From NCBI GenBank assembly GCA_965240325.2, contig OZ251255.1:434001-498000 (forward strand): a stretch of DNA of 64,000 nt, given 5' to 3'. The notes under the pieces were generated by a model. It had not been told where the DNA came from. It did no database searches and saw only the letters and a program-made list of their open reading frames with translations. Source of the DNA: Rebecca billardiae RCC1528. Its lineage: Eukaryota > Protista > Haptophyta. A program made the position numbers and the translations under genes. This document shows, piece by piece, positions 26,217-56,988 of this stretch (the first letter of the stretch is position 1; each line of letters begins with the position of its first letter).

Positions 26217-29200
26217 TCAGATGCTGAGCACACACTCGCCAGCAGCAGCAGCAGCGACGAGAGCGGGCGCCGGTGCTGCTACTCGTCGCATCACCCCGCG
26301 GTCGTCGCCTCCGCCCGACGCGCCCCCCCCCGCAGCAGCAGCAGCAGCAGCCTGCTGCCGCTGCTGCTCGCCGCTCGCGGCCCCCGCCTCGGTGGTGGAT
26401 GTCGTCGCCGCCGCCGCCGCAGCGGCAGTGGGCGGCGCGCGGCCCGACTGCCGCCACGCCGCGCGCAGCGCTTTGGCGCCGCCCGCCGCGCTGATCTTGC
26501 CGTTGCCGTCGAGCGCCAGCCGGCGGAGCGTCGCGTTCGGCCGATCGCCGCGCAGCGCGTCGGCGAGCGCGCGCGCGCCGCCGTCGCCGATCCCGTTCTC
26601 GCGGAGCGTGAGCTCGGTGAGCGTGGCGTTCTGCCGCAGGCACGCGCCGAACGCCGCGGCGCCCTTGTCGCCGAAGCGGTTCCGATCCGCCCAGAGCTGG
26701 AGCACCGAGCGATTCGCGCCGAGCGCCGCCGCGATGGACGCGCCCGCTTCGGGCGGCAGGTCCGCGCCGCTCACGCGCAGTTGCAGGAGGGACGTCGCGC
26801 CTCGCAGGCCGTGGGCGAAGGCGGCGGCGCCCGGCGCGCCTAGCTGGGAGTAGTCGAGCGTGAGGCGCGTGAGTGTGCGACTGTCGCGCACGGCCTCGCC
26901 CAGCGCGCGCGCGCCCGCCGCGGAGCTCGTGAAGCCGATCAGACTCGCGGCGGTGAGGGACGGGCTGGCGCGGACGCAGCGCGCGCACGCGACAGCGCCC
27001 GCCTCGGTGAGCGCACAGGACTCGAGCCAGAGCTCCCGGACTCTGGGCTTCGCGCCGAGCGCGTCGAAGAGGCCCGCCTGCGCCTCGTCGTCGGACAGCG
27101 CGCCCGCGCGACCGCCCGGCTGCGCTCCGATCTCCTCGCCACCCTCGCCGCCGCCCTCGCCGCCGCCCTCGCCGCCGCCCTCGTCGCCCTCCGCCCGGTC
27201 CGCCTCCGCCGCCTCGCCGCCGTCGGCGTCGGCAGGCGGCGTGGTGAGCGGCTCAAGCAGCGTCAGGCTGCGCAGCTGCGCGCAGCCCTCGCGCAGCGCA
27301 GCGCCGAGCGCGCGCGCGCCACGCGCGCCCATGCCCGTCCCGCCGAGCCGCAGCTCCCGGAGGCTCTCCCGGTTCCGCCGCAGCCCGTCCGCGAGCGCCT
27401 CGACGCAGTCGGCGCCGAGCGCGGTGGCGCGCACTGTGACGGTCACGAGGCGCGGCGCGGCCGCGCGCAGCGCGGCGCGCAGCGCGGCGCGCTCCTCTGC
27501 GCCCAGGGCGCAGTCGTGGAGGCTGAGGGCGGAGACGCGCCCGTCCGGGCTTGAGAGAACGCGCGCAAGCCCGCCGACCACCTGTCGCGGGAGGCAGCGG
27601 AGTGTCACGTCTTCGAGGCTCAGGGGCAGCGCGGCGCCAAGGGCGGCCGCGTGCTCGGGCGCGACGCGCGCCGCCGTGGCAGCCTGGTGCTTCTTCGCAC
27701 CGCCGCGCGCGCCCGGCGGCGCGGGCCCGCGCGTGGCGGCGCGCACGGCGCCGCCCGACGCTACCAGTCTGCGCAGCCGCGAGTCGCCCAGCTCGGCCAG
27801 GAGCGCAGACCAGTCCGCCGCATCCGCGCTGCTCGCGCCGCCGTCGCGCGCGCCGCCGCGCGCCAGCAGCGCGCCGAGCCGCGCGGAGAGGAAGCGCGCG
27901 CGCACGGTCGCGTCGAGCGCGCGCTGCTCGTCACCCACGGCGCGGAGGATGGCGGCGAGGTCGCGCGGCTCGCTCGCGCGCGCGTCGGCGATCGCGAACG
28001 CCGCCGCGCGCGCGCCCAGCCCCCGCGGGAACGCCGCCTCGCGCTGCCGCTTCCGCTCGGAATCTTCCAAGTCTTCCGCGTGGAACCCATCGACCAGCGC
28101 GACGCCGACCGTTGGTCGCTCCTCGGCGGGGTCGGGCACGCGGCAGTCCCCGCCGCCGCGCTGCCGCCGGTGCTGCGTCGACGACGACGGCGCGTGCCGA
28201 GGGTTGCGCACGGCAACGAGCACGTCGTGCAGAAACCCGGGGCCGCGGCCGCTCACCAGACTTGTGTACAGTTCAAACCCAACCCACGCGCGCGTGAACG
28301 CTGCGCCCTCGCGGTCGACGACGCTCACGGTGCCGTCGGCGAGCTGAAGCGCGCGGTAGAACGGCGAGTGCGCCACGGGGCCCGCCAGCTCCGTGCCCAC
28401 GGCGTGCTGCCGAATCGCGTACGCACACACCCAGTATACGGTCGCGCCCGTCGCCTCCGACGGCGCGCCGGCCGGCGCGCGCGCGCGCGCGTGCTCGTGC
28501 AGGCACGCGACGAAGTCGGCGACGGGCTCGCCCCACCAGTGGCTCACGAACCACTGCGGCGGCTGCGGCCCGTTCGCCACGAGCTCCACCAGGCTGCACC
28601 CCCGCGCGCGCGTCGCCGGCAGGATCAGGTGCGCGTTGAGGTCATACAGCGAGATTGTATCTCGCGAGAGCGGCGCGCCGGCGCGCGCGGGGTCGGTGGA
28701 GGTCCAGCGCTCGCGCGCGCAGAGGACGGTGGCCGCGTCGAGCAGCCGGTCGAGCTGCTCGAGCGTGATCCCGCGCAGCGCCGCCTCGCCGATCTCGCAG
28801 CCCGAGAAGTTGCCGCCGCCCCGAGGGTTAAGGACAGCCCAGCGCTCGGACGGTCGGAGCGGCGCCGGAGCGACGAGCGAGCCCTCGGCAAACTCGTGGC
28901 CGCGCGCCATGACCACCGCGTCGGGTGTGCCGGGAGGCGGCGGACCGGCCGGGAGGCCGGCCTCCCACGCGTGCAGCTCCGCGTACCACCGCGCGAGCGA
29001 CGCGGCGCCGCCCGCCGGGTCGGGCAGCGGGCGCGCGCGCATGAACGCGCGCGCGCGCAAGCGGCAGCTCCAAGTCGTCGGCGAGCGCGGCCAGGGCCAG
29101 GAAGTGGCGTGCACCGAGCGCAGCGCCAGAGTCGTGCTCGAAGCGCGCCCAGGCGCGCTCGGACGCGCCCTCCACCTCGGCGGCGGGCGCGCGGACGGCC

Positions 29201-29319
29201 TCCGCGGCATGCGGCTCCGCGGCCGCGCGCGCGCGCGCGGCCGCGCCGACGACTTGCGTGGCCGCCTGCACGGCTCGGCCGCCGCGCCGGGAGGATTCGG
29301 ATGACGCGCCGTTTCCCAT
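26217..29319 (-). CDS. N-myristoylated TIR/HET-like domain plus ribonuclease-inhibitor-type LRR protein (frameshift at a (CG)n tract)
   Basis: MGNGASS start at 29319. PQWFVSHWWG...YWVCAYAIRQH...FTRAWVGFE. C-terminal LRRs such as LTELTLRENGIGDGGARALADAL. The N-terminal frame joins the main frame only across (CG)n 29046..29058. Confidence 0.75.
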
Positions 29320-29907
29320 CGCGCGCTCGCGGCGTGCCCCGTGCGATCGCCCACGTGCTCACGCAAGCGCCGAGCGCTGGCCGCCGTTGCTCGTCAGCCC
29401 ACCGTGCGCGCGGCCGCCGAGAGACGGACGGGCCCTGATGATCGCGTGTTGACTGGCCCAAAGAAATGGCCAAGCGGCAAGCGCGGCCCCGGGCCGGGCG
29501 GACGAAACTGACTTGAACCAATTCCGACGGCGCTACGGCAGCCCTCATCAATCGGTGACGGCCGTGACGGCTTCCGATGCCAGGCGGTGACAGTTGGCGG
29601 GCGTCAATCCGTCGCCTACTAGTAGATGACAGACACGTGCGGAGTGACGCCTTGATGACGTCATCGCGTGTGCGCGCGAGGGTCAGCGACGCCGGCGGAT
29701 GCCGGTGCCACGGTGGCGGCGCGCTGGGCATCATTGCGATGCGGCCGGATCTGGCGGACGCCGACCGTACGTGAAGGCCAAGGGCAGGCCGGCACCCTGA
29801 CCGGAAACCCGCCGGCGCACCGCCGTCCGCCGGCCGCGACGCATGCGGCTCGCCCGCGGGCGCGACTGGTCCCGTGCCCGACCGCTGACCCCAGCGTGTG
29901 CGCGTGC

Positions 29908-30741
29908 TCACGAGGTCTCCACTTTCTCGACGTCCCAGAAGTTGAGGTAGCAGTCGACCATGTAGTCCGTCGGCTTCTCCTTCCGCCAGCGCTCCGCGTC
30001 GGCCGGCTTGTTGTAACGGTATTTGTGGAGGCTCTCGTGGTTGGCTGGGTTCAGCCAGCGGCCTGCGTACGCGTGGCCGTTGTTCGCGACGTTGTTCTCG
30101 GCCCACTCGTCGAGGTTGGTGAGGAAGTGGATGGCCATCAGGTTGAGCACGCAGTCCAGCACCGTCTCCGCCATCGCGTTCACCAGCACCGTCGTCACCA
30201 TGCAGATTGTGCCCTGAAACTGCTCGCGCGCAGCGACGCGCGTGAGGACGGCGTGCGGCCGGTCGACGGCAGGCGGGTCGCCGAGGCGCTCGCACACGGC
30301 AACGTAGCTGCTGTACATCTCCTCGTACCGGCGCAGCACCAGGTTGTACGACTCGCCGTACCCGGCGAGCAGCATCACAGGGATCGTCACCACCACACGG
30401 ATGGCGAACAGCAGCCAAAAGTACTGACGCGCCGTGAGCGACGAGAAGACGATGTCATCGCCCTCCTCCTCGAGGTCGACGATGCGCTGGCCGAAGTTGA
30501 GCGCCGAGTCGGCGAGCATCAGCACGCAGTACACGGCGAGCATCACCGGCGCGACGTGAAACTTCCCCGGCATCTTCAGCCGCATTCGCCAGCCGGCCTC
30601 GGTCGAGTATTCGTCATACATTGCGGCGAGCCCCTGGCGCAGCGACGCCTGGAGGGTGCGCAGACCAGCGCGCTGCTCAGCCGTGAGCTCTGGGCCCTGC
30701 GGGTTGAGCGGGTCGCCCTCCTTGTACCGGCGTGGGGGCAT
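29908..30741 (-). CDS. Intronless multi-pass membrane protein of unknown function
   Basis: Normal amino-acid composition, strong GC3 bias, 3-4 hydrophobic segments, TVLDCVLNLMAIHFLTNLDE motif. Confidence 0.75.
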   Translation of the reverse strand: MPPRRYKEGDPLNPQGPELTAEQRAGLRTLQASLRQGLAAMYDEYSTEAGWRMRLKMPGKFHVAPVMLAVYCVLMLADSALNFGQRIVDLEEEGDDIVFSSLTARQYFWLLFAIRVVVTIPVMLLAGYGESYNLVLRRYEEMYSSYVAVCERLGDPPAVDRPHAVLTRVAAREQFQGTICMVTTVLVNAMAETVLDCVLNLMAIHFLTNLDEWAENNVANNGHAYAGRWLNPANHESLHKYRYNKPADAERWRKEKPTDYMVDCYLNFWDVEKVETS

Positions 30742-31199
30742 GGCGTCGGCGAATGTGGGCGAGCGGCGGCAAAGCAGTTGACGCCGTCGTCGTGCTTGAC
30801 GTCGGTCAACTTTCATTCACGTCATCGACTATGGGGGTACGACTTGTTTTTATTGCATGAAGTTTCTGAACAACTACTTTCCGATACAGTTGACTGAAAG
30901 AATCAGAGTAGAACTTGCGCATAATAATGACTGTCGTTTCTCTGGCGCGGCATTCATGCGGACGAAAACCGGAAAAGTTCCTCTTATTTAGTGGGATGCT
31001 GGGCGCCGCGATGCATTGCATGCCGGCCGATTTAATGATACAGTAGATGGTTTATGCGGTGCTGGGCGTGCAGCGCCTCGCCCTGCGTGCGACCACCACG
31101 GGCCGGCACCGCACTGTTACTGACTGACTCCCCGGCGTGTGCCCCGAGTGCCGGCGTGCCGTCACGTGGTCTCCACCACTCGGGACGAGCCCACCAGGC

Positions 31200-31810
31200 C
31201 TTCTCGACGTCCCAGAAGTGCATGCAGGTGAGCAGTCAGCCATGATGTAGGGCCGTCGTCGCGGCTTCACTTCTTCCTGCCACTACCGGCATGTTGACCA
31301 CGCCGGCAGTCACAGCTGCCAGCACCGTCTCGTCCGCCATATCGCGTCAGCGGCACCGTGGCGTCACCTTGCAGATGATGCCCGCCAGGAACTGCTCACG
31401 CCGCCGGTCGCGGGCCCGACCAGGCGCTCAGCCTGCCACTCTTATGGCGGCCGCCCGATGGCTAGTGCCGCGGCGCCGGCTGGTCGACGGTTGGCGGGAC
31501 GTCGGTCCGGGACGACGCCGAGGCGCTCGGCACTCACACCGGCCGCGTCCGCCTAGCTGCGGCGCTGCACAGCTCCGCTGGTATCGACTACGACGCAGCA
31601 CCAGCACAGCCGGCACCAGCTGGTGGCACTGGCGCCGATCATGACTCTGTGACGAAGCCTTCAAGAAGTTATCGACGGTCCGGCCCGGCCCGACCCCGGC
31701 TGAAGCGCGCCGCATTGTCAGGCCGCGAACCGGTGCACAGCTGCTCCGAGCAGCAGCCTGCCACTGCTGATGTCTGATGCCGAGCAGCGCGGCCCGACGC
31801 GACGATTGTC
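31200..31810 (-). pseudogene. Degenerate tandem paralog of the 29908..30741 gene
   Basis: Colinear matches (TTCTCGACGTCCCAGAAGT; CCAGCACCGTCT..CCGCCAT; CGCCGAGGCGCTCG) interrupted by many 1-4 nt insertions and deletions. Confidence 0.8.
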
Positions 31811-31926
31811 CGGTCGCGTCTGCTGCGACACGCTGATGATGGCCCATCAGCTGGGGTAGTGGCCCGGCGGCCGCCCGCCGCGCCCGTCGGGCTATCGTCC
31901 GATCATAGCACTGCTCGCCATCGCGC

Positions 31927-34473
31927 CTACGTCACCGGCCAAGCAGGCAGCACGACCGGCGCTGGGCCTCGGACAGCCGCTCGCGCATCCTCCGCAGCAG
32001 TCAGCAGGGGCTTCGCCGCCGCCGCCGCTGCCGTCCGCGCCACCGCCTGATCGTCGGCCGGGGCGTGCGCCGCGCCGTCAGTCGGAGAAGCCCCCGCCGC
32101 TGCCCCCGCCGCGGTGGCCTCCGCGTGGCCGAGTGCCGCTAGCTCTGCCGAGCCGAACGAGAGGAAACCGCCGTGGCGGCCGCCGCCACTGTCGCCGCCG
32201 CCTCCGTCTCGTCTGGACGCGCTGCCCCCGCCTCCGGACGGGACCTGCTGCTGCGGAGCACCGGACCCGGGCGCTCCGGAGCCGGACCGGACCTCGACGA
32301 TGCTGCATGCGGCGCCGGCGCACACGCCGAGCGCAAACACGCCCGAGTCCGCCAGCGCCTCGACGCGTGTCGGCACCTCGCAGTCCGGGGGCAGCTGCGC
32401 CTCCCCGGGTTCCCGGCCCGCGTTCCCGCCCTGCCCGAGCGCGCCGTGCGTGCCGCGGCCGCACGCGTACACGGCGCCGCGCGCGTCGAGAAACAGGCTG
32501 TGCTCGGCGCCGGCCGAGATTGCGATCACGGCCGGGGGCGGTGACAGCGGCACCACGCCGCCGCCGTCCAGCCGCCCCGCGCTCGGCGCCGGGCCGCGCC
32601 CGACGAACGGCTCGAGCCGCGCCGGCCTGAACACGGACGGCAGCGCCACCGCCGCCTTGCACCAGCGCGGCCTGCCGAGCCCGAGCCGCCCGCCCTCGGC
32701 GCAGCCGCACGCGTACACGCTGCCGTCCGCGGCGAGGAGGAGGGTGTGCGAGCGGCCTGCGCTCGCGCTGACGACGCGCACGGCGGCGAGCGAGTCGACG
32801 CGCCGCGGGAGCAGCTCGAGCACCGCTGGGGCACTGCTGTCACAACCGTCGCCGCCGCCGCCGCCGCCGCCGTGAGCGCCGCCGCCGCCGCCGGCGGAAG
32901 CGCTCACGCCGCCGGCGTGGGCCCCGTCGCAGGCGCCACAGTCCGCCGCGCCTTCGCGCCTGCGCGCGTCGGCGGTGCCGTCGCCGGCGGCGGCGGCAGT
33001 GGCGTGGGCGCCGCGTGGGCGCTCGGTGGCGCTGCCCGCGCTGTGCCGCCTGCCGCCCGCGCCGCCATCTCCGGCGTATCTCCCGCTCGAGATCTGATCT
33101 CCCGCCGATCTCGTCGCCGCGTCCGCATCTGCGGGCGCGCGCTGCCCGGCATCGCCGCCCAAGTCTGCCGCGGCGGCGGCCGAGCCACGGCGCTCGTCGT
33201 GTGCCCAGCGCGGCACGTCGGCCACCGCCGTCGGCCGGCCGTGGCCGAGCTGCCCGCTGTCCGCGCGGCCCCACGCCCACACCCGACCGTCCGCCGCCAC
33301 GGCTACTGTGTGGTCCCGGCCAGCGCTCACGCCAACCACCGCGCCCGCGCGCGCCGCGAGCGAGTCGATGCGGCGCGGCGTGTACTGCCGCTCCTCGCCG
33401 CCGTGGCCGAGCACGCCACACAGCCCGTGGCCCCAGCTGTACACGCCGCCGTCGGCGCCCAGCGCAAAGCTCTGCACCTGCGCCACGGCCAGGCGGCGTG
33501 GCGCGTCCGGGGGGGGGGGGGGGGGCATGGCGCGCGCGGCGCGGCGCCCCTCAGCCAGTCAGACGCGCCGCCGTCCGGCCACGCGGGTCAGCCGCGCGCG
33601 CGCGGTACGCGCCACGGAGAGGCCGCGCTCTCCTCCGCCGCGGGAGATCGCGATCTCGCCGGGCCCCTCGGCGCCGCGCGAGATCGCGATCTCGGCACGC
33701 ACCTGCGCGGCAGCGACTGCCGCGACACGCACCGAGTACGCGAGGGCGGCGACCGGGCGCGGCGCGCACTGGTCCTCCTCGTCGCCGTGCCCCAGCCGCC
33801 CCGCGCCGCCACGGCCGCAGCTGTACACACGCCCCGCCGCGCTCAGCAGCAGCAGGTGGCTCCCGCCGGCTGCCACAGCCACCATGCGAACCGCCGCCGC
33901 CGGGCCGGCGACCGGCCGCGGCGTCGGCACGCACAGGGGCGGCGCGTGGCTCGTCGGCGGCGTGGGCGGGCCCGGGCCGCCGTGGCCCAGCGCGGCCTCG
34001 AGTGCACTGCGCACCAGCGTGTGCCCGCGCAGGAAGTGGCCACACGTCGAGACGCTGCCGCCGCGCCGCCCGGCGGCGGCGGCGCCGCAGCCGCCGCCAC
34101 CGCCGCCGCCGCGGGCGTCCACAAACGCGCTGAACACGGCGCGCACGGTGCCACCGCACGCGACGAGGCGCGAGTGGCCGCACGGCGCGGCCGCACGCCG
34201 CTCGCGCACGAGCAGCGCGTGCGCCCACGACGCCGCGCCGGCCGGGAGCGCGCGCGGCAATTCCGAGTCGCCGCGAGCAGCCGCGCGCGCGCGCAGCGCG
34301 CGCTCGAGCGGGGCGAAGCGGAGGGCGCGGCAAGTGGCGCTCGTGCGCGCGAGGTCGTCGAGGTGCTCGACGTGGAGCAGCACGAGCTCGAGCAGCGCGT
34401 CGGGCAGCGCGTCGACGAGCGAGAGCGCGGGCACCTCGAGGAGGTGCCCACCCACCAGCTCGGCGGCCGCCAT
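31927..34473 (-). CDS. F-box plus RCC1-repeat protein
   Basis: LVDALPDALLELVLLHV..LARTSATCRAL (F-box). Multiple VAAGGSH/VSAGRDH/YSCGRG..GRLGHG repeats. Intron 33478..33702. Confidence 0.85.
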
Positions 34474-34629
34474 CGTGCTCCGGCCGCGGCGGCCAAGAGC
34501 GATCTTGCGCGCGAGATTTCGCCGCAGCGCCGCCATTTCTTTACGCCGCCGCATCAGCCCCCGTCTGTGGGCGGTGCCGCGGAGGCGCAAGAGGGGCGCG
34601 CGTCGCGGCGCGCGTGCGCTTCGTGCACG

Positions 34630-35135
34630 ATGCGGGGCTCGCGCGAGGTGTGCCTCGCCGCGCTCGTCGTCACCATGATGATCTCGTGGTACGCCGTCAA
34701 CCTCCACCCGGACCTGAGCGTAACGGACGCCCCGCGCAACCGCCGTTTCGGCGGCGGCGTGGGCGCGTTGCACGCGCAGCGCGCGCTCGTGGCGAACGCG
34801 GGGATGGCGGCGGCGGCGGACACGGCGGCTGCGCACGGCGGGCAGGGGGCGCATGCCGCCGCGTCCACGCCCGGCTCGAGCGGGGCCCTCGCCGCAGTCA
34901 CGGGCGGCGGCGCGGTGGGCGCGGCGGCGGGCGGCGGCGGCGCGGCCGCGGCCGCCGCCGAGTCGGGCGCAGGGTGCCCCCCCGACCGCCGGCCGTATCA
35001 CGTCATCATGACCGCCGCCTCGGGCAAGTACCAGGTGCGTGCACGCGCCCGCGGCCCGCGCGCCCCCCGGCCGCCCCGGCCCTGCGCCCCGGTGCGCGCG
35101 CGCGCGCGATCGCTCTGTTGGCCCGGCTTTGCTGA

Positions 35136-35166
<31 letters not shown>

Positions 35167-38100
35167 GCGGCTGCGTGCGCGCAGGAGTGGCAGTCGCGCA
35201 TCGCGTACTACCACTACAAGAAGCAGAAGGCCCTGCACCCGTGCTCGGAGATGGGCGGCTTCACGCGCCTCGTCAACCTCCCAGGCGGTGTGCGCGCGCC
35301 CGCGCGCCGCCCTTGGGCGCGGCGCCGGCGGCGGGGGGCGCGGCGCCGGCGGCGGGGGGCGCGCCGCCGGCGGCGGGGGGCGCGCCGCCGGCGGCGGGCG
35401 CGGCAGGTCTCGCGCCGGCGCGGTTGTGCCGGTGGTTTGGGCAGGGGGTGGCGGTGTGGGTGTGTGGGCGGCTGGGTGGGGGCGGGTGGCGGGCATCGGG
35501 CGTCGTGCGCGAGCCGCACGCGCGGCGGCGGAGGCTGGGTTGCCTAGCCCACTGCCGGCGCCCACTGCGGGCGCGCACGCTCGAACGCACCGCACCGCGC
35601 GCGCCCCGCCCGCTGCCACCACCACCGCCGCCGCCGCTCACCCCCGCGCCCGCCGGCACCCCCGCCGCCGCCCGCCGCGCGTGCCCGCAGGCAAGCCCGA
35701 CGCCCTCGTCGCCGAGATGCCCACTGTCGTTGTGCAGCAGCTGTCGGGCGGGCGGCGCGAGGGCGGCGATTACGGATTCATCGTCATGAACAGGTGCGCG
35801 GCGGTTACAAACGGTTACGGGCGGTTACGGACGGTTGCGGGCGGTGACGGGCGGTGGCGGGCGCTGGGGGGGCGGTGGGCGGAGGCGCGGGGGCGGGGCC
35901 GCGTGGCAGCGCCACGAGCGCGCCAGTGGCGGCGGGTGGGCGGGAGTGCAGGGCGGCGCGCGCGCGCGCTCGCTCGCCGCGCGGCGGCGCCGCCGCCGCT
36001 GCGGACAGCTGCCGCCGCCGTGGCCCCTTGCAGCGCAGCGAGTCCGGGGCGTGGACGGACTCAGCCCCCTCCACCCCTCGCGCCCCGCCCTCTCGCGCGC
36101 AGGCCGTGGGGCGTGATGCAGCTGCTCAAGACCGAGCACTGGCGCGCCATCCCTGAGGAGTATGTCCTCATTCTCGAGACTGACCATTTATTTATGCACC
36201 CGCCGCCGAATAAAGCGACGCCCACGCAGCCCGCGGCGTTCAAATTCTACTACATGAACTCGAAGGCGCGTGCGCGCGCGCGCGCGGGCGGAGGGGCCGG
36301 GCGGCGGTGTCGGCGGCCGGCTGGCTGGCTGGGGACTGGCACGGCCCGCCTGCCGCTCGCGCGCGCGCGGGGTCGCCGCCGGCGCCGGGAGCGGCTGCGC
36401 GCGCGCCCTTGGCAGGCCGAAACCGCGTGCGCGTGCGCCGCACCCAGCGGACTCTCCCGGACTCCCCTCCCCCGCCCCCGCGCGCGCAGGACGTGAAGCT
36501 GCAGCCGGTGATCCGCAAGTACTGGCAGGGCAGCTTCGACGAGGTCGACCCCGTGGGCCCCTCTCCCGCCATCATGACCAAAGCCATGCTTGAGCGCATC
36601 ACGCCGGCATGGTGCGCGCGCGGGGCGGCGCGGCGCGTTGTGGCGCGGTGCGATGTGGCGCGGTGTGGCGTGCGCGCGCGGTGCGCACGCCGCGCGGCGG
36701 CGGCGCGGCGTGTGCGCCGCTGTGTGTGCTCTGGAGGAGGCCAGGGGAGGGGTGCGGACAGCACGCGCGGGGGTCGGGCGCTCGCCCACGCCTCGCGCCA
36801 CCAGCCCGTGCCCCCTCCTCTGCCTCACCCCCCTCCTATTTGATCCCCCGACGCGGTGTATTGATTGGCTGTATGCATTCGATCGGTTGCCGTATGCATT
36901 TGCTGCGTTGCCGTGTGTGCAGGTGGGACTACTCCCTGCGCATGAAGCGCGACGACCCGGACGCCAACCGAGAGTTTGGCTGGGTGCTCGAGATGTGGGG
37001 GTACACGCTCGGCGTGCTCTCTCTCGGCATCCACCACATCGTCGACCCAGAGTTCCAGGTGCGGCCGGGCGCGGGGGGGGGGGGGGGGGGTGAGGGTGAG
37101 GGTGAGGGGTAGGGTTGGGGCGCGCCGCGGGGCCGGGCGCGCCGTGGATCTGGGCGGGAGGGGCCGGGCGCGGGGCGCGCCGTGCGGCCGGGCGCGCCGC
37201 GCGGGGCCGGGGCGGCGGCCGTGCGGGGCAGGGGCGGCGCTCGGGCGCGCTGCGGGGCCGGGCGATGACAGAGAGCGTGCACGTGCGTGTGTGGTGCGGC
37301 GTGTGGCGTGTGCATGCGCCTGCGTGTCTGTGCGGATCTATGCGGACGTGTGCGTGTGTATCCCGCCCCCCCCTCACGCACGCGCCTTCCGTGCCGTGCG
37401 CCGCGCCGCGCGCGCCTCCGCCGCCGCGGTGCCGCCCCGGCGCCCTCGTGCGCGCCGGGCGGCCCTCCCCACGACGCCACGCCGCCGCACACACCCACAC
37501 ACACCGGCGGCACACCAGTGCGAGCCGCAGGGCACCGGGATGGACGGCATGCACATTTACCCGATCTACCACTACACCTTTGACATCCGGACCGACACGG
37601 TCTGGTCGGTCTCGAAGCGCACCTTCCACGGCCGGTACTTTCCGCGAAACTACCGGATGCCGCCGCCGTGCTCGTCCGAGTCGCACTTCGCGCTCGCCGG
37701 CATGTTCAACGAGGCGTCGGCCAACCTGCCCGGCTGGGAGGGCGACGACGCCAAGGGTGACAGGTGCGGCGGCGGTCGCAGTGGCAGTGGCGGCTTGCGG
37801 CAGTGGCGGACACGCGGCGCAGCGCACCCCCGGCGACGCCCTCGCGCTCCTCTGAGCCGACCCTGCCCACTCGCACCCGGCCGGCCCTACCCTACACCGC
37901 CCACACACGCCTCGGCGCCCGCGCGCGCGCAGCCAGCCGTGGCCGGCTCGCACGGACGACTGGCGGAACGACTACAGCGTCCCGCCCTCCGCGGCGGACG
38001 CGGCCGTGGCCGCGGCAGCCACGACGCCTGGGCACTGGCCGACGCCGCTGCGCCCGACAGACCCCGCGTTCGGCGCGGCGGCGGCGCGCGGCGCGCGCGC

Positions 38101-40355: not shown

Positions 40356-41945
40356 ATGAGCAGCTCTCCCTCGGAGGGGCAGCGTGTGCAGCGCACTGCT
40401 TCACCGCCGAGCGGGGACTTGCCGCAGGCGCCGATCTCGCCCGCCCGTGATGCCAATCCCCGCCTGGGAGATCGGACCCCCACCCTCGCGATCCGCGATG
40501 CGCTCGAGCGCGCGCGCGACGCGGGTCGCCGCCGCCAAAAGGTGATTCAAGTGCCCGCCGTGGTCTTCGGGCTCAGCCTCTTCATAGTCGCCCTGGCGTT
40601 TGGCTTCGTGCCCACGCTGGCCAACCTGCCATGGGCACGCGGCTCGATGGTCAGCATCAGCTACACCCTCGGCCTGCTGTCCCTCCTGCTCGCGCTCATC
40701 CCGACTCAGCGGCGCGTCGTCCGCGCCGGCGTCGTGCTCTACTCGCTCTTCATGCTCTACACCGCCGGCGGGGTGGGCGCGGGGAGCGTCGTGCCGACGG
40801 CGCTTGCGCTGGCCACCGACACCCACGAGCCGTGCAGCGGCGACGGCGCTGCCTCCTCCAGCGCGTGCACGCTTGCTCTCGTGAGGCTGGTGCGCTCGTG
40901 CGTCATTGTGGCCGTGCACGTGTGCGGCATCGTGCTCTTGCTCGGCTCGCTCTGCCGCGCGCGCATGCAGGCGCGCGCGCAGCTCGATCTGGTCTGGCGT
41001 GTCTTCGCGGTGACGCAGATCGTGATGGGCCTCGCCCGCCTCTCGTTCGACATCCCCGCTGCGCTGGGGTACCACCCGCCACGAGCGGCCCCGTTCGCCT
41101 CCGCGTCTCTGCTCCTGTTGACCGGCGCGGCGGCGGCGACGGGTCGGCTGCGTGAGGTGACGCAGGCCTGGCTGGCGTCCAACGGCGAGGGCATCCGCTC
41201 CGCGTCGATGCTCAGCGTGCTGCTCAGCGGGCGCTCGGCGGAGGAGGCGCTGCTGCTGGCAGAGGGCCTGCTCCGCAGCGTGAGCGCAGACAAGGTGGAC
41301 GCTGCCGGGCTGCGCGGCGACCGCTCCGAGCAGGAGTGCTTCGCGCTCTCCGAGCCCGCCTCGTTCGGCAGCGTGGACGCCTTCGTGTGCCACGCGCACG
41401 GCGACAGCGCGGAGGAGAGGGCCGAGCAGCTCCGGCTGTGGGCGGCCGACTTCAGCCGCGAGCACGGGCGCGCGCCGCGGCTGTGGATGGATGCCTACTG
41501 CCTCGAGGCGAGGTCCATCGAGCCGTCGCTAGAGTGCCTGCCGGTCTTCCTGGCGAGCTGCGACCGGCTGCTCGTGCTGCACGGCCCGGCGCTCCCACAG
41601 CGCCTGTGGTGCGTGACCGAGCTCTTCTTCCACCTCTCGATCGGCGCACAGCGCGCGAGCAAGACGGACGTGCTCCGGCTGCCCAGCGCGACCGCCAACA
41701 ACTTGTTGCCGGCCGGCCTCCTCGTCGCCCAAGACTTTGACGCGCGCCGCGCGCAGTGCATGTACAGCCACGACCGGGATCTTCTCCTGACGATCCTGGA
41801 GGCGTACCCGGGCGGCATCCCCGCGTTCAACACCGCGGTCTCGCGCATGCTCGTGATGGGGTCGGAAGGCGGCGGAAGCCGCGGGCCGGACGAGCAGCGC
41901 GGTCATCATGGCGCCATTGTTGTGCCGGTTGGCCCCACATTCTAA
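40356..41945 (+). CDS. Intronless multi-TM (about 6) protein with C-terminal TIR/HET-like domain
   Basis: Hydrophobic helices followed by DAFVCHAHGD...LWMDAYCL...LPVFLASCDRLLVL...RLWCVTELF...FDARRAQC...DRDLLL. Confidence 0.8.
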   Translation: MSSSPSEGQRVQRTASPPSGDLPQAPISPARDANPRLGDRTPTLAIRDALERARDAGRRRQKVIQVPAVVFGLSLFIVALAFGFVPTLANLPWARGSMVSISYTLGLLSLLLALIPTQRRVVRAGVVLYSLFMLYTAGGVGAGSVVPTALALATDTHEPCSGDGAASSSACTLALVRLVRSCVIVAVHVCGIVLLLGSLCRARMQARAQLDLVWRVFAVTQIVMGLARLSFDIPAALGYHPPRAAPFASASLLLLTGAAAATGRLREVTQAWLASNGEGIRSASMLSVLLSGRSAEEALLLAEGLLRSVSADKVDAAGLRGDRSEQECFALSEPASFGSVDAFVCHAHGDSAEERAEQLRLWAADFSREHGRAPRLWMDAYCLEARSIEPSLECLPVFLASCDRLLVLHGPALPQRLWCVTELFFHLSIGAQRASKTDVLRLPSATANNLLPAGLLVAQDFDARRAQCMYSHDRDLLLTILEAYPGGIPAFNTAVSRMLVMGSEGGGSRGPDEQRGHHGAIVVPVGPTF

Positions 41946-43217: not shown

Positions 43218-45101
43218 ATGGACGACGCGGAGGAGGCGTACGACGACGACTTTGAGGACGACGACGAGCCGGACGCGGCCGCGTCGGCGTCGGCGGCGGA
43301 TGCTGCGGCGGCGGTGGCGGCGGAGTCATCGCAGCCCGCGCCCGCGCCCGCGCGCGCCGCGCTCAGCGCGAGCAACGCGCCGCCGGCGCTGGGCGAGCCG
43401 GCGGCGCCGGCCGATGGGCGTCCCAAGGCTGGCCGGCGGGGCGCCGCGCCCGTCGCGCGCGCGCACGCCGACCCCGGTGCCGACGCGGCGGCCGACAGCG
43501 GCGGCGGCGGCGGCGGCGGCTCGGCCGCGGCCGCCGGCCGCGGCTGGGTCGAAATTGCATGGGACGAGCTCGAGCTGGGCGACGTGGTGGCGCGTGGCGC
43601 GTCGGGCGAGATCCGCGTCGCGTACTACCGCGGCCAGCTCGTCGCCGCCAAGTCGCTCTTCGCCGGCGCCGCGCGCTCGCCGCTCAAGTCGGAGCAGGTG
43701 TGCCCCGCCGCGCCGCGCCTAACCCTAACCCTCACCTAAACCCGAAGCCGAAGCCGAAGCCAGCCGGCAAGCCCGCCCGCGCCGCGCACGCGCCGGCTGG
43801 CCTGCCGCATGCCGCGAGCGCGCGCGCCGGCTGCGCGCGGAGCGGGGAGCGTGCCGCGCGCGGGCAGCGGGTGTGGCGTGCCGGCAGCGCGGGGGCGTTG
43901 GTGTGTGCGCGTTGGTGCGTTGGTGTGTGTGCCGTGTGCGGAGAGCGCTCCCGCCCTGCCGTGCGCGGCGCCGCGGCGCGCGGCGCATGTGGCTCCGCGG
44001 CCGTAACCGTCTCCGTACCTGCCTCCGCGCGCGCGGATGCGCACCCGCGCACCCGCGCGCCCGCGCGCCCGCGCTAAAAACAACAACAACTGTTTATATT
44101 TTTTTTCGCGCAGGCGGAGTGGCGCCGCGCCTACGACGAGTACATGAGCGAGATCCTGACGCTGTCGGGGCTGCGCGGCGCGCCGCACGTGCTCACGCTC
44201 CTCGGCGCGTGCATGCAGCCGGCGCTCGGGCGGTGCGCGATCGTGTGCGAATTCTGCGAATGTTCTCTTTTCGAAGCCTTGCACACGCCGCCCAGCCACC
44301 TGCTCAGCCCGGCGGCGCGCGCGGCGCAGCTCGCCGCCGCCGCGGCCGCGGCGGCGTCGGAGGCGGCGGCGATGGGCGGCTCGGCCGCGCCCACGCCCGC
44401 GGCGGCGGCCGTTGCCGCCGACCCGCGGCTCCGCAGGCCGGCGGCGGCGCGCGTGCTCGCCCTGCTCCTGGGCCACGAGTCCGGGTCTTCCCCGGACTCC
44501 GACCCGGCGGCGGCGCTCGGGTCCTCGCTGGGCGTGGCGGGCGCGCTCGACGCGCGCACCTACAGCAAGCGCGCGCTCGCGGCCGTGCTGGCGCAGGTGT
44601 GCGCGCGCGCGCGTTGAGTGCTCGCGCGTCGAGCGCGCGCGCACGCGCGACGGGCACTCGCATCGGGCGCGGGCGCGCGCGGCCTCCGCGAGGCCTGCGC
44701 CCTGCCCCGCGCCCGCGCGCGCCCCCCGAACCCACACCCAACCCCCGCCGCTGCCCCCGCCGCCCCGCCAGGTCGCGGACGCGCTCGCGCACCTGCACGC
44801 CCTCGCGCCCGCCATCGTGCACAGGGACGTCAAGTCTCACAACGTTCTGCTGACTGTGCGGCGCGCCGGCGGCTCGGCGGCCGCGGGCGCGGCGGCGGGC
44901 TTGGCTGACGGTGGCGGCGGTGGCGGCTCGGCGGCGGGGGGGGCGCTCGAGCTGAGCGCGCGGCTGTGCGACTTTGGGCTGGTGGGCACCACGACCATCG
45001 ATGCGGGTACGCCCGGGTACATGGCGCCCGAGCTCTTCAAGAAGACAGCCTACTCGAAGGTGCGTGCGCGCGTGTGCGTTTGCGTGTGCGTGCGCGTGCG
45101 T

Positions 45102-45150
<49 letters not shown>

Positions 45151-45393
45151 CGTGTGCGTGCGTGCGTGTGCGCGTGTGTGTGTGTGCGTGTGCGTGTGTG
45201 TGTGTGCCTGCCCTGCCTACGCACAGCGCAGCGCTAGAGCCGGCCGCGTGCCAGGGGTGGTCAGGGCGGGCGTGGCGTGTGCTCTGCCGCCGCCGCGCCG
45301 CCGGCCTCAGGCCAACCGACACGCGCCCGACACGCACGCACACACGCACGCACACACACACGCACACACGCACACACGCACGCACACATGCAC

Positions 45394-45432
<39 letters not shown>

Positions 45433-45968
45433 CACACACGCACACACACACACACACACGCACACACACACACGCACACACACACACGCACACACACACA
45501 CGCGCACACTCACGCGGGGGCCCGCCGCGCGCGCGCGCGGCGCAGGCGGTCGACGTGTACGCGCTCGGGATGGTCGTCTGGGAGGCGTGGGCGGCCGAGC
45601 TGCCATTCGACGGGTACGCGCCCGCGGACATCAGGCGACTGGTCACCGCCGGTGAGCGACCGAGCCTGCCGCGCGCGATGCCGCGCGCCGTCGGCGAGCT
45701 CGTCACCGCCTGCTGGGACGCGAACGCCGCGCGCCGCCCGGCGGCGGCGGAGGTCGGCGAGCGCCTGCGCGCGCTCGCGGAGACGCTGCCGGCCGGCGGC
45801 GCGCGCGCGGGCACGCCCGGCCTCGGCGCTACGCACCCGCCAGGCCACGCCCGCGGCGGCGCCGCCGCCGCCGCCGCGCCACGAGAGCCCGCCGGCCCCG
45901 CGGCCGCGCTCGCCAGCCGCTCGGAGGTGGTCGCTCTCTCGGACTCACTCGACGCGCTCCTGCGCTGA
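43218..45968 (+). CDS. TKL-group protein kinase, 4 exons
   Basis: [40 protein letters not shown]...RP. Introns 43698..44113, 44597..44771 and 45060..45545. Confidence 0.92.
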
Positions 45969-51966: not shown

Positions 51967-52485
51967 CGTCCATTGCCCCCCTTTATTATTTCTTTGATCC
52001 GCCCATCAGTCCATCACGAGTCACGACATGTGTACGCATGCAGTTCGGCCCCGCCCTTTATAATTCGGCCATGTAGTTCGGGACTTTCTGCTCACTTTCG
52101 TCGGGAGCGCCCGCAGTTTTCGGGCCGCCTGAATAAGATCCCGTGGACCCTCCCCGTGTGGTTAGTCAGAGCCTCTGAGCGCGGCTCTCCGGAGCGCGTG
52201 GACTCCGAGCGCGGGGCGGCCGTTCTTGCTGCAATGGCCGCCTTGATGTGGTCACGGCAACGCGCCCCTCACCTGCCTGCGCCGGTCTGTTTTGTGGCGG
52301 TGCGAAATAAAATAACATCGCCACGCCCATCACGAGAAACTCGACGGATTGACTGCCGGCACTTCCGACTTCAGGCAATCGCGGAATCGGGCCTGCGGCG
52401 CGCCGCTGAGCAGTCACTGAGCAGCTCGCTGCATCTGCGCCCAGCAGCTGCGCCCGCCCGCGCCGCGGGGCGCTCGTGGGGGAGC

Positions 52486-53538
52486 TCAGCGCTGCTTCTT
52501 GAGGTCGGCGTGCTGACCGCCTGCCGCCAGGCCGGACGGCGGCGTGGGCGTGGCGGCCGCGGCAAGGCCACTGGCAGCGGCGGCGGCGGCGGCCGCGGCG
52601 TGCGGGCGCGGCGGCGCGGCGGCGGCACTGCCCGCCGCGGCCACGGCTGGCTTCTTGCCCGCGGCGGGCGGTGGCGGGCTCGCGAAGAGCCAGGCGTCCC
52701 CGAACGCCGGCGTGCACAGCAGGCACCCCGCCGCGTAGCTGCCCACGCCCAGCCCCGCCAACGGCCCCAGCAGCGGGACTGACATGAGTAACTGGAGTAC
52801 CAGCCCAAAGCCTAGGAGCTGCGGCGCGGCGCGCGCGCACAGGCGGAGCTGCTGGCTGAGGCCGACGGCGCGGAGCGAGGCGAGGTGCACGCGCACGCAC
52901 TGCACGCCCGTCGAGAGCGCGCTCACGCACAGCGACAGCGCCGCAGCCGCGCGCGGCCGCGCCTCGCCCGCGAGGCCGCGCGCGGCACCCACCGCCATCG
53001 CCGCGCACACAGCGTGCACGAGGGTTGCGAGCGTGGCGCGCAGCGTGGGCAGCGCGCGGCGCTCGACGCGGAGCCGGCGCGCGCGCGTCTCCCCGCCGTC
53101 CGCCGCCTCGACGCCCAGCAGCACGAACTCCACCGCCGGCGTCGCCGCGAGGATGGAGGCGAGAAAGAAAGCGCACGACGGCCAGAGCCCGAGCACGCCG
53201 CCGAGCCCGTGGGCGAAGGAGACCCACTCGCGCAGCGCGGAGCGCTCGGCGTCGACCGCGGCGTCCACCGCCGCCTCCGTCCGCGCCTCGCCGAGCCACA
53301 GCCGCAGCGCGCCGAACAGCAGCGCGGCCAGGCCGACGAGCGCGATCGCTGGGAACGCGAAGAGAACAGCGAGCGAGCCGGCGGCGAGGACGAGGGTGGA
53401 GAGGGCGTACAGGACGACGGCGATGGCGGCGAAGGCGCGGAAGAAGCGCTTGTACGTGCGCACCACGCCTGGGTCGCGCGCCGCGAGCTTGATGCCGCGC
53501 AGCGCCGCGAGCGCGCCCGCGGCCACGCCGCCGAGCAT
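52486..53538 (-). CDS. Multi-pass membrane protein, EI24/CysZ-like
   Basis: ALRGIKL N-terminus, TM hairpins, C-terminal LGFGLVLQLLMSVPLLGPL..GSYAAG pattern. The family call is tentative. Confidence 0.55.
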   Translation of the reverse strand: MLGGVAAGALAALRGIKLAARDPGVVRTYKRFFRAFAAIAVVLYALSTLVLAAGSLAVLFAFPAIALVGLAALLFGALRLWLGEARTEAAVDAAVDAERSALREWVSFAHGLGGVLGLWPSCAFFLASILAATPAVEFVLLGVEAADGGETRARRLRVERRALPTLRATLATLVHAVCAAMAVGAARGLAGEARPRAAAALSLCVSALSTGVQCVRVHLASLRAVGLSQQLRLCARAAPQLLGFGLVLQLLMSVPLLGPLAGLGVGSYAAGCLLCTPAFGDAWLFASPPPPAAGKKPAVAAAGSAAAAPPRPHAAAAAAAAASGLAAAATPTPPSGLAAGGQHADLKKQR

Positions 53539-53871
53539 TGGACGATCGAGTCGAGACGCCGCGGCGGCCGCCCGCTCCACTCCCGCCCGGCCGGTCCTTT
53601 TTTCTGATTTCTTTGCCCGGACAAGGTCTGGAGTCCCTTGGCAGTGGTGAGCAGCTTTCACAGCTTGGCTCGGCAAAGAGGCTCGGCTGCCGCCGCGGCA
53701 ACCCCACGGACGGGCGCCGGGGCGCCGCACAGAAAGCTGGTGCGCGGCTGCGTGTGGTGCAGCGCTGGTGGCAGTCCAAGCCGCTGCGCTCATTTTGCGC
53801 CGCCGCCAGCGCTCGCGGGCGGCCTCGGGGCGCGCGCCCAACGTGCCCGCCTCGGCTCTGCGCGGCGCGGC

Positions 53872-56692
53872 ATGCTGCGTGCCCTCGGGATCGGCGGCCC
53901 CGCCAGCCCGGCCCCGCCGCCCCTCGTCGCCAACGCGCGCCGCATGGCGCCGCGCACGTCCGGCGGCGGCCGCGTGCGCCGCGCCTCTGTCGACGACATC
54001 GGTGTGACGCTCCAGGACGGCTTCGACCAGGAGACGGGGCGCGTGAAGGCGCCGCGGACGGTCGACGTGCACGTCGACGCCCTCGCCGACGAGCCCAACC
54101 CCAAGGTCCACGCCGCCGAGCGCCTGACCGCGCGCATCGAGGAGGCGCGCGCCGCCGCTGCCGAGCTGCGGCTGCGCACGCGCGTGCCTGCGCTCGTGCT
54201 GGGCTCGGCGGCGTTCTTCTCCGCCGCGGCGCTCGCGGGCGCGCTCATCGCGTCGGGCTCCGCCTGGGCCACCTTCGCGCTCCTCGCCTGCGTCCCCTCC
54301 TTCCTCGTCGCCCTCCTCGGCCTCTTCGCGGCCGACGGCGCGTGGCCCGCGGTCGTCTCGGTGGGGGGCACGGCGCTGTTGTGCGTGGACGGGTGCGTGC
54401 TGCTCGCGCGCTCGGTGCTCGACGCGCTGCTGATCGGCGGGCAGTGCCCCTGGCCCGACGCCGCGCTGCCCGCCTCCGCCGCCGCGCTCCCCATCCCGCG
54501 CCTCACCGTCTCGGCCGACGGGCGGCGCGACGCGGCGGCGCGCGCGCTCGGCGGCGCGTGTCAACTCGCCCTGACGGAGGGGACGGTGGCGCTGGCGGCG
54601 GCGCTGCTCGGCGTCGGCTCGGCGGCGCACGTCGGCCGCGCCCTCGCCAAGAAGCGCCCGCGCCGCGCGCTCCTCTCCGCGCTCTGGGGCTCGATCGGCC
54701 GCTACCTGACGCTGCGTGGGCTCGGCGCGCTCCTATTGCCCGCCGCTACTGGCTTTACCCGCATTCTACCCGGCGGGCTGGAAGGGACGGGGCTGGGCTC
54801 GGAGGGCGTGACGCTGCCGCGGCTGGGCTCGCTCGGCGCGCCGGGCACCGCCGACGACCCCACCGGCGTCGTCGGCGCCTCCGCCGAGCTCGCGTGCGCG
54901 CTGCTCCTCCTGCTGTGCGGCGTGCCGCTCGCGCGCCGCGCGCCGATTGCGCGTGTTCAGTCGTGGCTCGCGTGGCGCCCGCCGCCCGCGCCGCCGACCA
55001 ACTCGGTGGACGCGGGGATCGGCTCGCTGGTGGGCACGCAGCCCGACGCCGAGGTCATGATCGGCGCGGCGCAGGCCCTCTACGTCTACATCACCCTCGA
55101 CCATATCACCTTTCTAGATGTACTTAGGAGAGGGGTAAGTCGACCGCCTCCGAAGGAGCTGGACGCGGACGGTGGCGAATGGGCGGCGGCGGAGGAGGCG
55201 GCGGAGGCGGAGGCGATGGTGGCGAGGCGGAGCGTGGTCGGCGGTGGCGGCGCGCGCGGGGGCAAGCGCCGCTCCGTCGAGCGCGCGCCCGCCCCGCCCG
55301 CCCAAGCCGCCGCCGCCGCCGCCGCGGCGGGCGGCGCGTCGGCGCGCGCCGCGCCGCCCGGCCGCGCGGGCGGCGCGGGCGGCGTACACGGCGCCATCGC
55401 GCGCGCGCCGCGCCCGCCGCAGCGCACGATCACGGGGATCTGCGGCGTGGAGGGCGGCGGCAGCCCGTCGCGCGGCGCCAACCCGTTCCACGGCGGCGCC
55501 ATCGCGCCGGGCTGCCTCCCCGCCGCCGCGCCGGGCGCGGACGGACGGGCGGGCGCAAGAGGGGGGTTCGATTCGGGCGCGGCGCCGGCGGCGCGGCCGG
55601 CTGCGCTGACCGTCGTGACGGGCGCCAGCTCGCGCGCGGCGGCGGCGTGGCCGGGCCTGTTCGGCGGGCCGCTGCACGGCGTGGACTCGGGCCACCACTC
55701 GCCCCTCTCCTCCGAGCCCTCCTTCCGACGCCACTCGTGGCAGTTTCCGGGAACCGACCTCGGCCGCGGCCTCGGCGGCGGCGGCGGCGGCGGCGCGCTC
55801 GGCGGCGCGGTGGCGCATGGTGGCGGCGGCGCCGGCCGCGGGCACCGGCGGCTGTCGACGCTGCACACGACGGCGCGCACGGCGCACTTCGGCGACATCG
55901 ACGCGTACGTCTGCCACTCGTGGCACGACGACCCCGAGGCCAAGTGGGCCGCGCTCGAGGCGTGGCGCGTCAAGTTCAAATCGGCGCACGGCGGCCGCGA
56001 GCCGCGCGTGTGGCTAGACAAGGTTTGTGTTGACCCGGAGGTCCGGGCGTCGGTGTTGCAGGCGCTGCCGCTGTTCGTCGGCGGCGCGCGCGCGCTCGTC
56101 GTGCTCGTCGGCGAGACGTTCACCACGCGCCTCTGGCCCGCCGTCGAGCTCCTCCTCTTCCTCCACCTCGGCGGAACGCCCGCGCAGGTGCGGCGAGCCG
56201 CGCGGCGGCGAGCGCGCGGCGAGCGCGCGGCGCGAGCGCGGCGCGCGCGGCGCGCGGCAGCGGGCGGGCCGCGGCGGGTGGCGGCGCGGGCCGCGGCGGG
56301 TGGGCCGCGGCGGGTGGCGGCGCGGGAGTGACGGTGTGTGTGTGTGTGTGTGCCGCGCGCCCCGCGGCTCACGCGCCCCGCCGCCCGGACCCTCTCCCTC
56401 CCGGACCCCCGGACCCCCGGACCCCCGGACTCCCGGACTCCCGGACTCCGCCAGGTGCACATCCGGCCGCTGGAGACGGACGCGGTGCTTGGCTCGGCGG
56501 CGGCGCTGCTCACGCGGCTGGAGCGCTTCGACGTGCGGCGCGCGGCGTGCACCAAGGATTCGGACAGGGAGCGGCTGCTGCAGTTCGTCGACGCGGCGTA
56601 CGGCGGCTCGACCGCGGCGTTCAACCGCGCGGTGCGCGGCGCGCTGCGCGCGTGCGTCGAGGCAGGCGCCGCGGGCGGCGCGCGGCGCAAGC

Positions 56693-56741
<49 letters not shown>

Positions 56742-56988
56742 CGGCGGTGGCGGCGGCGGGATCGCTCTGAGCGTGGGCATGCTCACGCGCCCGCCCGCGC
56801 CGCCGCCGGGCGCGTCCGCCGCCGCGCCCAGCCGCCCCGCCGCGGCCGCGCCGCCCTCGCCCTCCACTTCGAGTGAATCGAGCGCGCCGCCGCCGCTGTT
56901 CACGCCGCCGCCGCCGCGCGCGTCGCCCCTCAGCGCGCTTGGGGGGCTGTTCGGAGGCGGCGGCGGCGGCGGCCGCAGGAGCAACTGA
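53872..56988 (+). CDS. Multi-TM protein with C-terminal TIR/HET-like domain (paralog of 40356..41945)
   Basis: TM helices. DAYVCHSWHDD...VWLDKVCV...LPLFVGGARALVVL...RLWPAVEL...FDVRRAAC..DRERLL. Intron 56188..56454. Confidence 0.8.

Follow-up and report, generated by a model that had tools for sequence, protein, structure and literature searches.

Two families of TIR/HET-like proteins in a haptophyte genome: an unannotated six-helix membrane module and a direct leucine-rich repeat fusion as partners of TIR-superfamily domains

TIR enzymes have a central role in the immunity of bacteria, plants, and animals, and how bloom-forming marine algae sense or resist viruses is largely unknown. A preliminary description of a 64,000-nucleotide stretch of contig OZ251255.1 of the haptophyte Rebecca billardiae RCC1528 (the whole stretch is hereafter referred to as the window) proposed that three genes lying within 31 kb encode membrane-tethered TIR/HET-like proteins of one undescribed family, possibly an innate immune system. 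The locus raises the question of whether these three genes, numbered here as genes 1, 2, and 3 in order of position, really share a domain, whether that domain belongs to the TIR superfamily, and what its partners could make of it. The window has a G+C content of 60-82% and its genes contain introns. We scanned a translation of all six frames (113,424 residues) for the composite motif [FY]V[SC]H.[WH] ... W[MLV][DC] ... R.W...E. There were exactly three matches, one in each of the three genes at the positions first proposed, while 300 residue shuffles of the same translation yielded none. Profiles of both families described below likewise found no further copies in the window. The glutamate that closes the motif is kept in all three genes, in the codons around 28273, 41620, and 56147 that had been named for it (Table 1). 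The preliminary description had also set apart a helix block, F....A.(C/S)...D...(L/I)L, downstream of the motif. This block is indeed present, but it is not a separate element, as in the gene 2 model it makes up the final strand and helices of that very domain.

Genes 2 and 3 are clearly paralogues by sequence comparison (BLASTP E 2e-18 with 37% identity over the core, and E 1e-7 over the C-terminal block), whereas gene 1 showed no similarity to either by BLASTP or by hidden Markov model search with a single profile. As gene 1 was undetected in these searches, one alignment was built for each family. For the first (A3), the gene 1 domain served as the query of a word search, which supplied 22 sequences. 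A word search with gene 2 gave only one relative, so the second alignment (A4), which comprises gene 2 and 90 relatives for a total of 91 sequences, was assembled by exhaustive profile search. When aligned to each other with hhalign, the two profiles matched with a probability of 95.5% and an E value of 1.4e-8 over 143 columns, which take in the F-V-S-H block, the W-x-C/D strand, the R-x-W-C-x-x-E block, and the C-terminal block. This profile-profile match indicates that the three genes carry one superfamily domain divided between two distinct families, one with genes 2 and 3 and the other with gene 1. Of the single family that had been proposed, the pairing of genes 2 and 3 holds, while gene 1 belongs elsewhere and is their kin at the superfamily level only. 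The closest relative of gene 2 (P0001, 49% over 512 amino acids [aa]) and that of gene 3 (P0025 from Diacronema lutheri, 61% identity within the domain) both come from other organisms, which indicates that genes 2 and 3 are old paralogues rather than a tandem pair of recent origin. The nearest named relatives of the studied genes belong to the haptophytes D. lutheri and Emiliania huxleyi. It should be noted that P0001 has an insert of ~70 aa (~437-505) within its R-L-W-C block that is absent from all other aligned sequences; this probably reflects an intron left unspliced by automatic gene calling.

To determine the fold of the shared domain, we relied upon AlphaFold2 models and their comparison with 48,161 PDB representatives by VIA-align. 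The gene 2 domain was modeled with a predicted local distance difference test score (pLDDT) of 91 and a predicted template modeling score of 0.87, and its best matches were the TIR domains of RPP1 (Z 11.2, 134 residues, 3.0 A) and IL-18Rbeta (Z 10.5), with RPS4 (Z 9.5), MyD88 (Z 9.4), and the SARM1 TIR (Z 9.2) further down. All of the best 15 rows were either TIR or ThsB, with nucleoside deoxyribosyltransferases and SLOG/LOG folds ranking lower. A Foldseek search of the PDB with the same model gave a similar picture, as the top 50 rows were nearly all TIR, with a probability of ~1.0 for plant TIRs and a TM-score of ~0.5. The TIR (flavodoxin-like) fold that had been anticipated for this domain is thus supported by the predicted structure of gene 2. 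Modeled with a pLDDT of 88, the gene 1 domain has a large extension at its N-terminus as well as an insert that is disordered. Its structure matches form a TIR-dominated list over residues 79-270, and Foldseek found nothing in the PDB at E <= 1e-3. DnaG/Toprim folds stood in the top Foldseek rows for this model, but their TM-scores of ~0.2 point to a different fold or at best to a generic alpha/beta similarity, and this candidate was rejected. Its nearest shapes in the ESM Atlas are unnamed clusters from diatoms, oomycetes (fused to TPR), and ascomycetes.

The A4 alignment has the consensus D-A-F-x-S-H-S-W ... W-x-D-K-x-C-I-D-Q ... R-L-W-C-x-x-E-L-F ... F-D-x-x-x-A-x-C-x-x-x-x-D-K-x-x-L-L. Across all 91 sequences, D25, W61, D63, C66, P80, R100, W102, and the glutamate E106 are invariant, and genes 2 and 3 keep every one of them. 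In the gene 2 model, E106 lies in the second turn of a helix (101-114) that directly follows a strand (86-93), which supports a predicted position that catalytic TIRs share, namely on helix alpha-C immediately past strand beta-C. The glutamate stands four residues past the invariant tryptophan, and the same spacing occurs in the W-C-L-x-E of plant TIRs and the W-x-x-x-E of SARM1. In the gene 1 family, the glutamate is conserved in at least 90% of A3, and gene 1 has Y-W-V-C-A-Y-A-I-R-Q as its counterpart of the W-x-D-K-x-C-I-D-Q block. The middle block, W-x-D-x-x-C-I-x-Q, is a hallmark of HET and not of canonical TIR domains. Among the 91 A4 domains, Pfam found weak matches to HET (PF06985) in 61 (best E 0.0012), to TIR_2 in 47 (best E 7.4e-7), and to TIR in 9. 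Given these matches, the label of TIR/HET-like is an accurate one, the more so as HET is an accepted remote relative of TIR in which the functional glutamate is kept (PMC4986451; PMC9153377; PMC10197012). When the A4 profile was searched against PDB sequences, the result was not significant (E 0.4), with local alignments that set R-L-W-C-x-x-E against the W-C block in the TIR domain of SIGIRR and D-A-F-x-S-H-S against the D-A-F-I-S-Y-S block in that of TLR15. The relative P0113 alone had no match among PDB sequences, and phmmer with the gene 2 domain returned only chance matches to KAT8, which were discarded.

Since HET is the Pfam family that matches most A4 members and the middle block is typical of HET rather than canonical TIR, the proteins might be imagined as HET-type effectors of cell death or self/non-self recognition whose action, in processes such as cell fusion or mating compatibility, would not involve NAD+ cleavage. 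In its consensus, the family does show three sequence blocks like those of fungal HET domains. However, all of the HET matches are weak. The proteins are also unlike fungal HET in that no window protein scores against this model, the family is non-fungal, and the glutamine of C-I-x-Q is missing from genes 2 and 3. The architecture differs as well: fungal HET domains stand alone or N-terminal to NACHT-WD40/TPR, whereas the domain described here lies either C-terminal of a membrane module or N-terminal of leucine-rich repeats (LRRs). To our knowledge, no allorecognition system has been described in haptophytes, which also counts against such a role, and we consider it very unlikely. Compared with catalytic TIRs such as RPP1/RPS4/RUN1, SARM1, and AbTir/ThsB, the domain has the same predicted flavodoxin-like fold, with Z scores of up to 11.2, a beta-A F-x-S-H block, and a glutamate four residues after a conserved tryptophan, at the predicted start of helix alpha-C. 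It departs from them in an extra invariant W-x-D-x-x-C(-I-D-Q) block after beta-B, in an extra C-terminal helix, and in sequences that remain below the Pfam thresholds. Its partners are also different, namely the membrane module or LRRs attached directly, in place of the NB-ARC, SAM/ARM, or Thoeris contexts of the catalytic TIRs.

The second component of genes 2 and 3 is the region that precedes the domain, which had been described as having about six N-terminal transmembrane helices. Six hydrophobic segments do precede the domain in both genes. We were interested in whether these represent a conserved unit, and found that the N-terminus of gene 2 matches those of 35 of its 108 relatives by phmmer, with E values down to 4e-24. 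The profile derived from these matches detected the N-terminus of gene 3 with an E value of 1.6e-19, compared with 0.01 for the best reversed or shuffled control. By this measure, the six-helix region is a homologous module whose similarity goes beyond mere hydrophobicity. Its conserved features are a basic helix before the first transmembrane helix, an L-L-A-L-L-P-T-D motif after helix 2, two cysteines in the loop between helices 3 and 4, and an R-x-x-x-Q-x-W-L-A-S motif after helix 6. The charge distribution of gene 2 under the positive-inside rule fits a topology in which both termini of the six helices face the cytosol, which would make the TIR-like domain cytosolic and place the cysteine pair in an outer loop. 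A Pfam search of this module in 37 members found no family, and no Pfam model covers it. The family to which genes 2 and 3 belong is very large and consists of marine protists, mainly haptophytes. Counted as representative clusters at 50% identity in a profile search, it holds no fewer than 3,315 clusters when E <= 1e-3 is required and 679 when the limit is E <= 1e-30, and a typical member is 430-650 aa long with several hydrophobic segments N-terminal of the domain. Thus, a protist family of thousands of clusters joins an unannotated but conserved six-helix module to a HET-like TIR domain, which also connects the fungal HET domains to a wide non-fungal distribution.

Two relatives differ from the usual layout. 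The best-scoring one, P0023 (1110 aa, ENA), has two full module-plus-domain units in tandem, with domains at 287-473 and 785-970, and is either a genuine fusion of two units or a pair of neighboring genes that were merged in the gene call. In P0049 (563 aa), the TIR-like domain is followed by an extra hydrophobic segment and a C-terminal Lectin_C domain (E 8.7e-6), which suggests a variant with a predicted extracellular sugar-binding domain. Outside of eukaryotes, two contigs filed under bacterial metagenome-assembled genomes match the domain, one from an unclassified bacterium (L002, 2809-3650) and the other from a member of Chitinophagia (L001, 13-261). The domain is split over two reading frames in L002, as it would be with an intron, and L001 is a fragment at a contig end, so both were set aside as probable eukaryotic contamination of the bins. 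We found no viral relatives in IMG/VR by pattern search and tblastn, and BFVD held only a weak match to a Tetraselmis virus TIR/WD40 protein. Thus, there is no evidence of exchange between virus and host.

Gene 1 is built differently. Its domain is followed by a linker of ~100 aa and then by approximately 10 RNI-type LRRs (Pfam LRR_6 E 2.4e-14), as had been described for its C-terminal part, and LRR_6 is the sole Pfam family found in any of the window proteins. The linker has no Walker A motif and gene 1 contains no nucleotide-binding oligomerization domain (NOD). More broadly, neither NB-ARC nor NACHT was matched in the three proteins by Pfam at E <= 1, and none has a Toll-type layout, as gene 1 lacks a transmembrane helix and genes 2 and 3 have six of them with no LRR. 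Both absences agree with the preliminary description. Toll-like receptors (TLRs) and TIR-NB-ARC-LRR proteins (TNLs) resemble gene 1 in coupling an LRR sensor to a TIR output. They are unlike gene 1 in that its order is TIR and then LRR, its LRRs are of the cytosolic RNI type, and no transmembrane helix lies in between; unlike TNLs, gene 1 has only the ~100-aa linker where an NB-ARC/NACHT domain would be. In other organisms, the fusion partners of the gene 1 family are RNI-type LRRs, EF-hands, TPR, ankyrin repeats, and ubiquitin. The family has diatom members (the Seminavis one is named 'expressed unknown protein'), the labels of Atlas clusters place it in haptophytes and chlorophytes as well, and no source searched has a name for it. 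From its sequence relatives and its model, gene 1 represents an unnamed branch of the TIR superfamily, one that is invisible to Pfam and paired directly with repeat sensors.

The start of gene 1 was more complicated. An MGxxxS myristoylation motif had been reported, and MGNGAS is indeed found at 29319, but in the assembly it is read in another frame than the main open reading frame (ORF). A (GC)n tract at ~29040-29065 on the minus strand sits exactly at the changeover between the two frames, and joining MGNGAS to the main ORF requires either an intron of 3n+1 or a 2-bp difference in the (GC)n tract. Such a difference could be an assembly slip or a real polymorphism. The profile of G+C at third codon positions offers low resolution for this frame switch, with frame A clearly ahead below ~29130. 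Among the four closest homologues of gene 1, two begin in a similar manner, P0003 with MGSGAS and P0005 with MGGCAS, and these shared starts make a lipid anchoring of gene 1 plausible.

How much of this has been described previously? The E. huxleyi relative is named 'TIR domain-containing protein' in UniRef, and Atlas clusters of the relatives bear both TIR and HET names. A 2025 study reported 15 differentially expressed TIR genes in Gephyrocapsa, with multiple N-terminal transmembrane helices, a conserved glutamate, and expression responsive to infection by the Emiliania huxleyi virus EhV (PMC12489294). Like genes 2 and 3, these Gephyrocapsa huxleyi proteins are of haptophyte origin, have several transmembrane helices ahead of a TIR with a conserved glutamate, and contain no nucleotide-binding site or LRR, a likeness in the features described. 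Unlike the present analysis, that study defines neither a conserved membrane module, nor the HET-like signature, nor the size of the family. In addition, a 2026 preprint described catalytic TIRs from several unicellular eukaryotes, and also a Chlamydomonas TIR that makes 3' cyclic ADP ribose (3'cADPR) and whose clade takes in haptophyte TIRs (10.64898/2026.04.20.719644). Our literature search found no paper that defines the six-helix module or the gene 1 family, sets out the HET-like signature outside of fungi, or establishes how large the family is. Hence, the proposal that these proteins were undescribed is only partly correct: genes 2 and 3 add new members to an already reported kind of haptophyte TIR protein with transmembrane helices, while their conserved module is undescribed and the gene 1 family is unnamed.

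With moderate confidence, we favor the interpretation that the three genes are TIR-superfamily members of two families that act as sensor-gated, nucleotide-cleaving modules. This builds upon homology, fold, motif conservation, and architecture, and would extend these to catalysis, activation through oligomerization, and a biological role. In genes 2 and 3, the six-helix module is followed by a conserved juxtamembrane helix and a predicted cytosolic TIR-fold domain containing HET-type blocks, whereas gene 1 would be a cytosolic, possibly N-myristoylated protein having its TIR/HET-like domain directly before the RNI-type LRRs with no intervening NOD. With the membrane module or the LRRs serving as the input, a signal would lead the TIR-like domains to self-associate, whereupon NAD+ or a related nucleotide would be cleaved with the help of the alpha-C glutamate, and the cleavage would either make a signal or deplete NAD+ as part of stress, immune, or cell-death signaling. 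Judged from the sequences and models, an NADase activity and an immune role would both be reasonable for these proteins.

Several observations weigh against this interpretation. None of the three window proteins matches TIR or HET in Pfam, even at E <= 1, let alone at the curated thresholds for TIR/TIR_2 and HET, and none of the 22 gene 1 family members has a TIR or HET match either. The fold match of gene 1 is a weak one (best Z 5.5). Within the domain itself, the near-invariant glutamine of C-I-D-Q is replaced by alanine in gene 2 and by proline in gene 3, both genes have cysteine for the near-invariant serine of the S-H-S-W block, and of the 47 columns conserved at >=80%, 14 depart from the consensus in gene 2, as do 11 in gene 3. 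These substitutions raise the possibility that the domain of gene 2 or gene 3 could be catalytically altered. Furthermore, the enzymatic activity of HET domains was still to be established as of a 2023 review (PMC10197012). The same losses of conserved positions would also fit non-catalytic TIR-type adaptors, which would only assemble homotypically, as do the TIRs of MyD88 and TLRs, and would draw other effectors either toward the membrane or toward the LRR sensor. Indeed, the adaptor-type TIRs of IL-18Rbeta, MyD88, TRIF, and MAL score nearly as high against the gene 2 model as the catalytic ones. However, the arginine, tryptophan, and glutamate of R-x-W-x-x-x-E are invariant in 91 domains and are kept in all three genes, and this invariance is most simply explained by catalysis. 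An adaptor function is therefore decidedly unlikely in our estimation. With the domains defined and a single glutamate in focus, the question of NAD+ cleavage by HET-type domains becomes addressable outside of fungi.

A different possibility concerns what such a cleavage would be used for. The domain could provide a general signaling output rather than an immune one, generating an NAD-derived second messenger below many kinds of sensors, much like a cyclase, in ordinary physiology such as responses to light, gas, Ca2+, or nutrients. The range of EF-hand, TPR, ankyrin, ubiquitin, and LRR partners in the gene 1 family would suit this role, as would the size of the gene 2/3 family, and the nearest Pfam-bearing neighbor in an Atlas feature search was an H-NOX cluster, although at a value of only 0.75. 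Large, fast-diverging, and domain-shuffled families are equally typical of immune repertoires, however, and the Gephyrocapsa genes with transmembrane helices respond to virus infection (PMC12489294). Such an output also has no known messenger or receptor. We regard a purely general role as unlikely, although by no means negligible. Still more broadly, one might envision the HET/TIR-like domain as the shared catalytic output of a lineage-wide, one-component signaling system in haptophytes and other marine protists. Here, the six-helix module would be a new receptor core that senses ligands or the state of the membrane to gate a TIR enzyme, gene 1 would stand for a second, as yet unnamed branch with direct LRR, EF-hand, TPR, or ankyrin sensors and no NOD, and NAD-derived messengers would serve both immunity and physiology. 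This is a tentative scheme that we would sooner expect to fail than to hold, while still granting it some weight.

Three members of one superfamily within 31 kb might suggest a co-regulated immune locus or functional gene cluster. Nevertheless, the three genes are divided between both strands and between two families, and interspersed with them are an RCC1-repeat gene, a hydroxyproline O-arabinosyltransferase-like (HPAT-like) gene, and a protein kinase gene, all of which are unrelated to the TIR-like genes. Moreover, the nearest relatives of gene 2 (P0001) and gene 3 (P0025) are found in other organisms, with only 37% identity between the two genes. We consequently rejected the functional cluster, and a common immune locus seems extremely unlikely. 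The HPAT-like gene is spread over two ORFs and therefore probably contains introns.

Table 1. Positions of the three TIR/HET-like genes, their component parts, and the intervening genes, numbered from the first nucleotide of the window
Feature	Position	Strand	Content and basis
Gene 1, main open frame (1049 codons)	26217..29366	-	N-terminal extension, divergent TIR/HET-like domain, ~100-aa linker, RNI-type LRRs, low-complexity tail
Gene 1, candidate 5' coding part	29040..29319	-	Start MGNGAS (N-myristoylation-type); other frame than main ORF
Gene 1, TIR/HET-like domain (291 aa)	27927..28799	-	FVSHWW, YWVCAY, TRAWVGFE; Glu codon 28272-28274; alignment A3, AlphaFold2, hhalign
Gene 1, RNI-type LRRs (~10 units)	26442..27644	-	Acidic Gly/Glu-rich insert between units; Pfam LRR_6 E 2.4e-14 and translation
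Gene 2, single-exon coding sequence (529 aa)	40347/40356..41945	+	Six-helix membrane module, juxtamembrane linker, HET/TIR-like domain
Gene 2, six-helix membrane module	40542..41147	+	Positive-inside rule, N-in/C-in; two conserved Cys in helix 3-4 loop
Gene 2, HET/TIR-like domain (186 aa)	41304..41861	+	Glu codon 41619-41621; AlphaFold2, structure matches to TIR
Gene 3, exon 1	53638/53872..56187	+	Membrane module (~54178-54924), long low-complexity linker, first two-thirds of domain
Gene 3, domain part in exon 1	55861-56187	+	Glu codon 56146-56148
Gene 3, predicted intron (267 nt)	56188..56454	+	GT...AG, inside TIR-like domain; sequence, and Diacronema lutheri P0025 aligns across junction
Gene 3, exon 2	56455..56988	+	Last third of domain (F-D-x-R-x-A-x-C ... 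D-R-x-x-L-L block, 56455-56700), then Gly/Pro-rich tail
RCC1-repeat gene	31927-35625	-	
HPAT-like gene	~35000-38000	+	Split over two ORFs
Protein kinase gene	44412-45968	+	

Two further features of gene 3 were observed. Its membrane module and domain are separated by an Ala/Gly/Pro/Arg-rich low-complexity linker of ~300-350 aa (54930-55850), and the corresponding linker of the Diacronema homologue is about as long but has no detectable similarity to it. Part of the gene 3 linker could be an unrecognized intron. Finally, the 3' end of the predicted intron within the domain (56395-56452) consists of short tandem repeats of the CCCGGAC(C/T) type, which are located directly before the AG acceptor.

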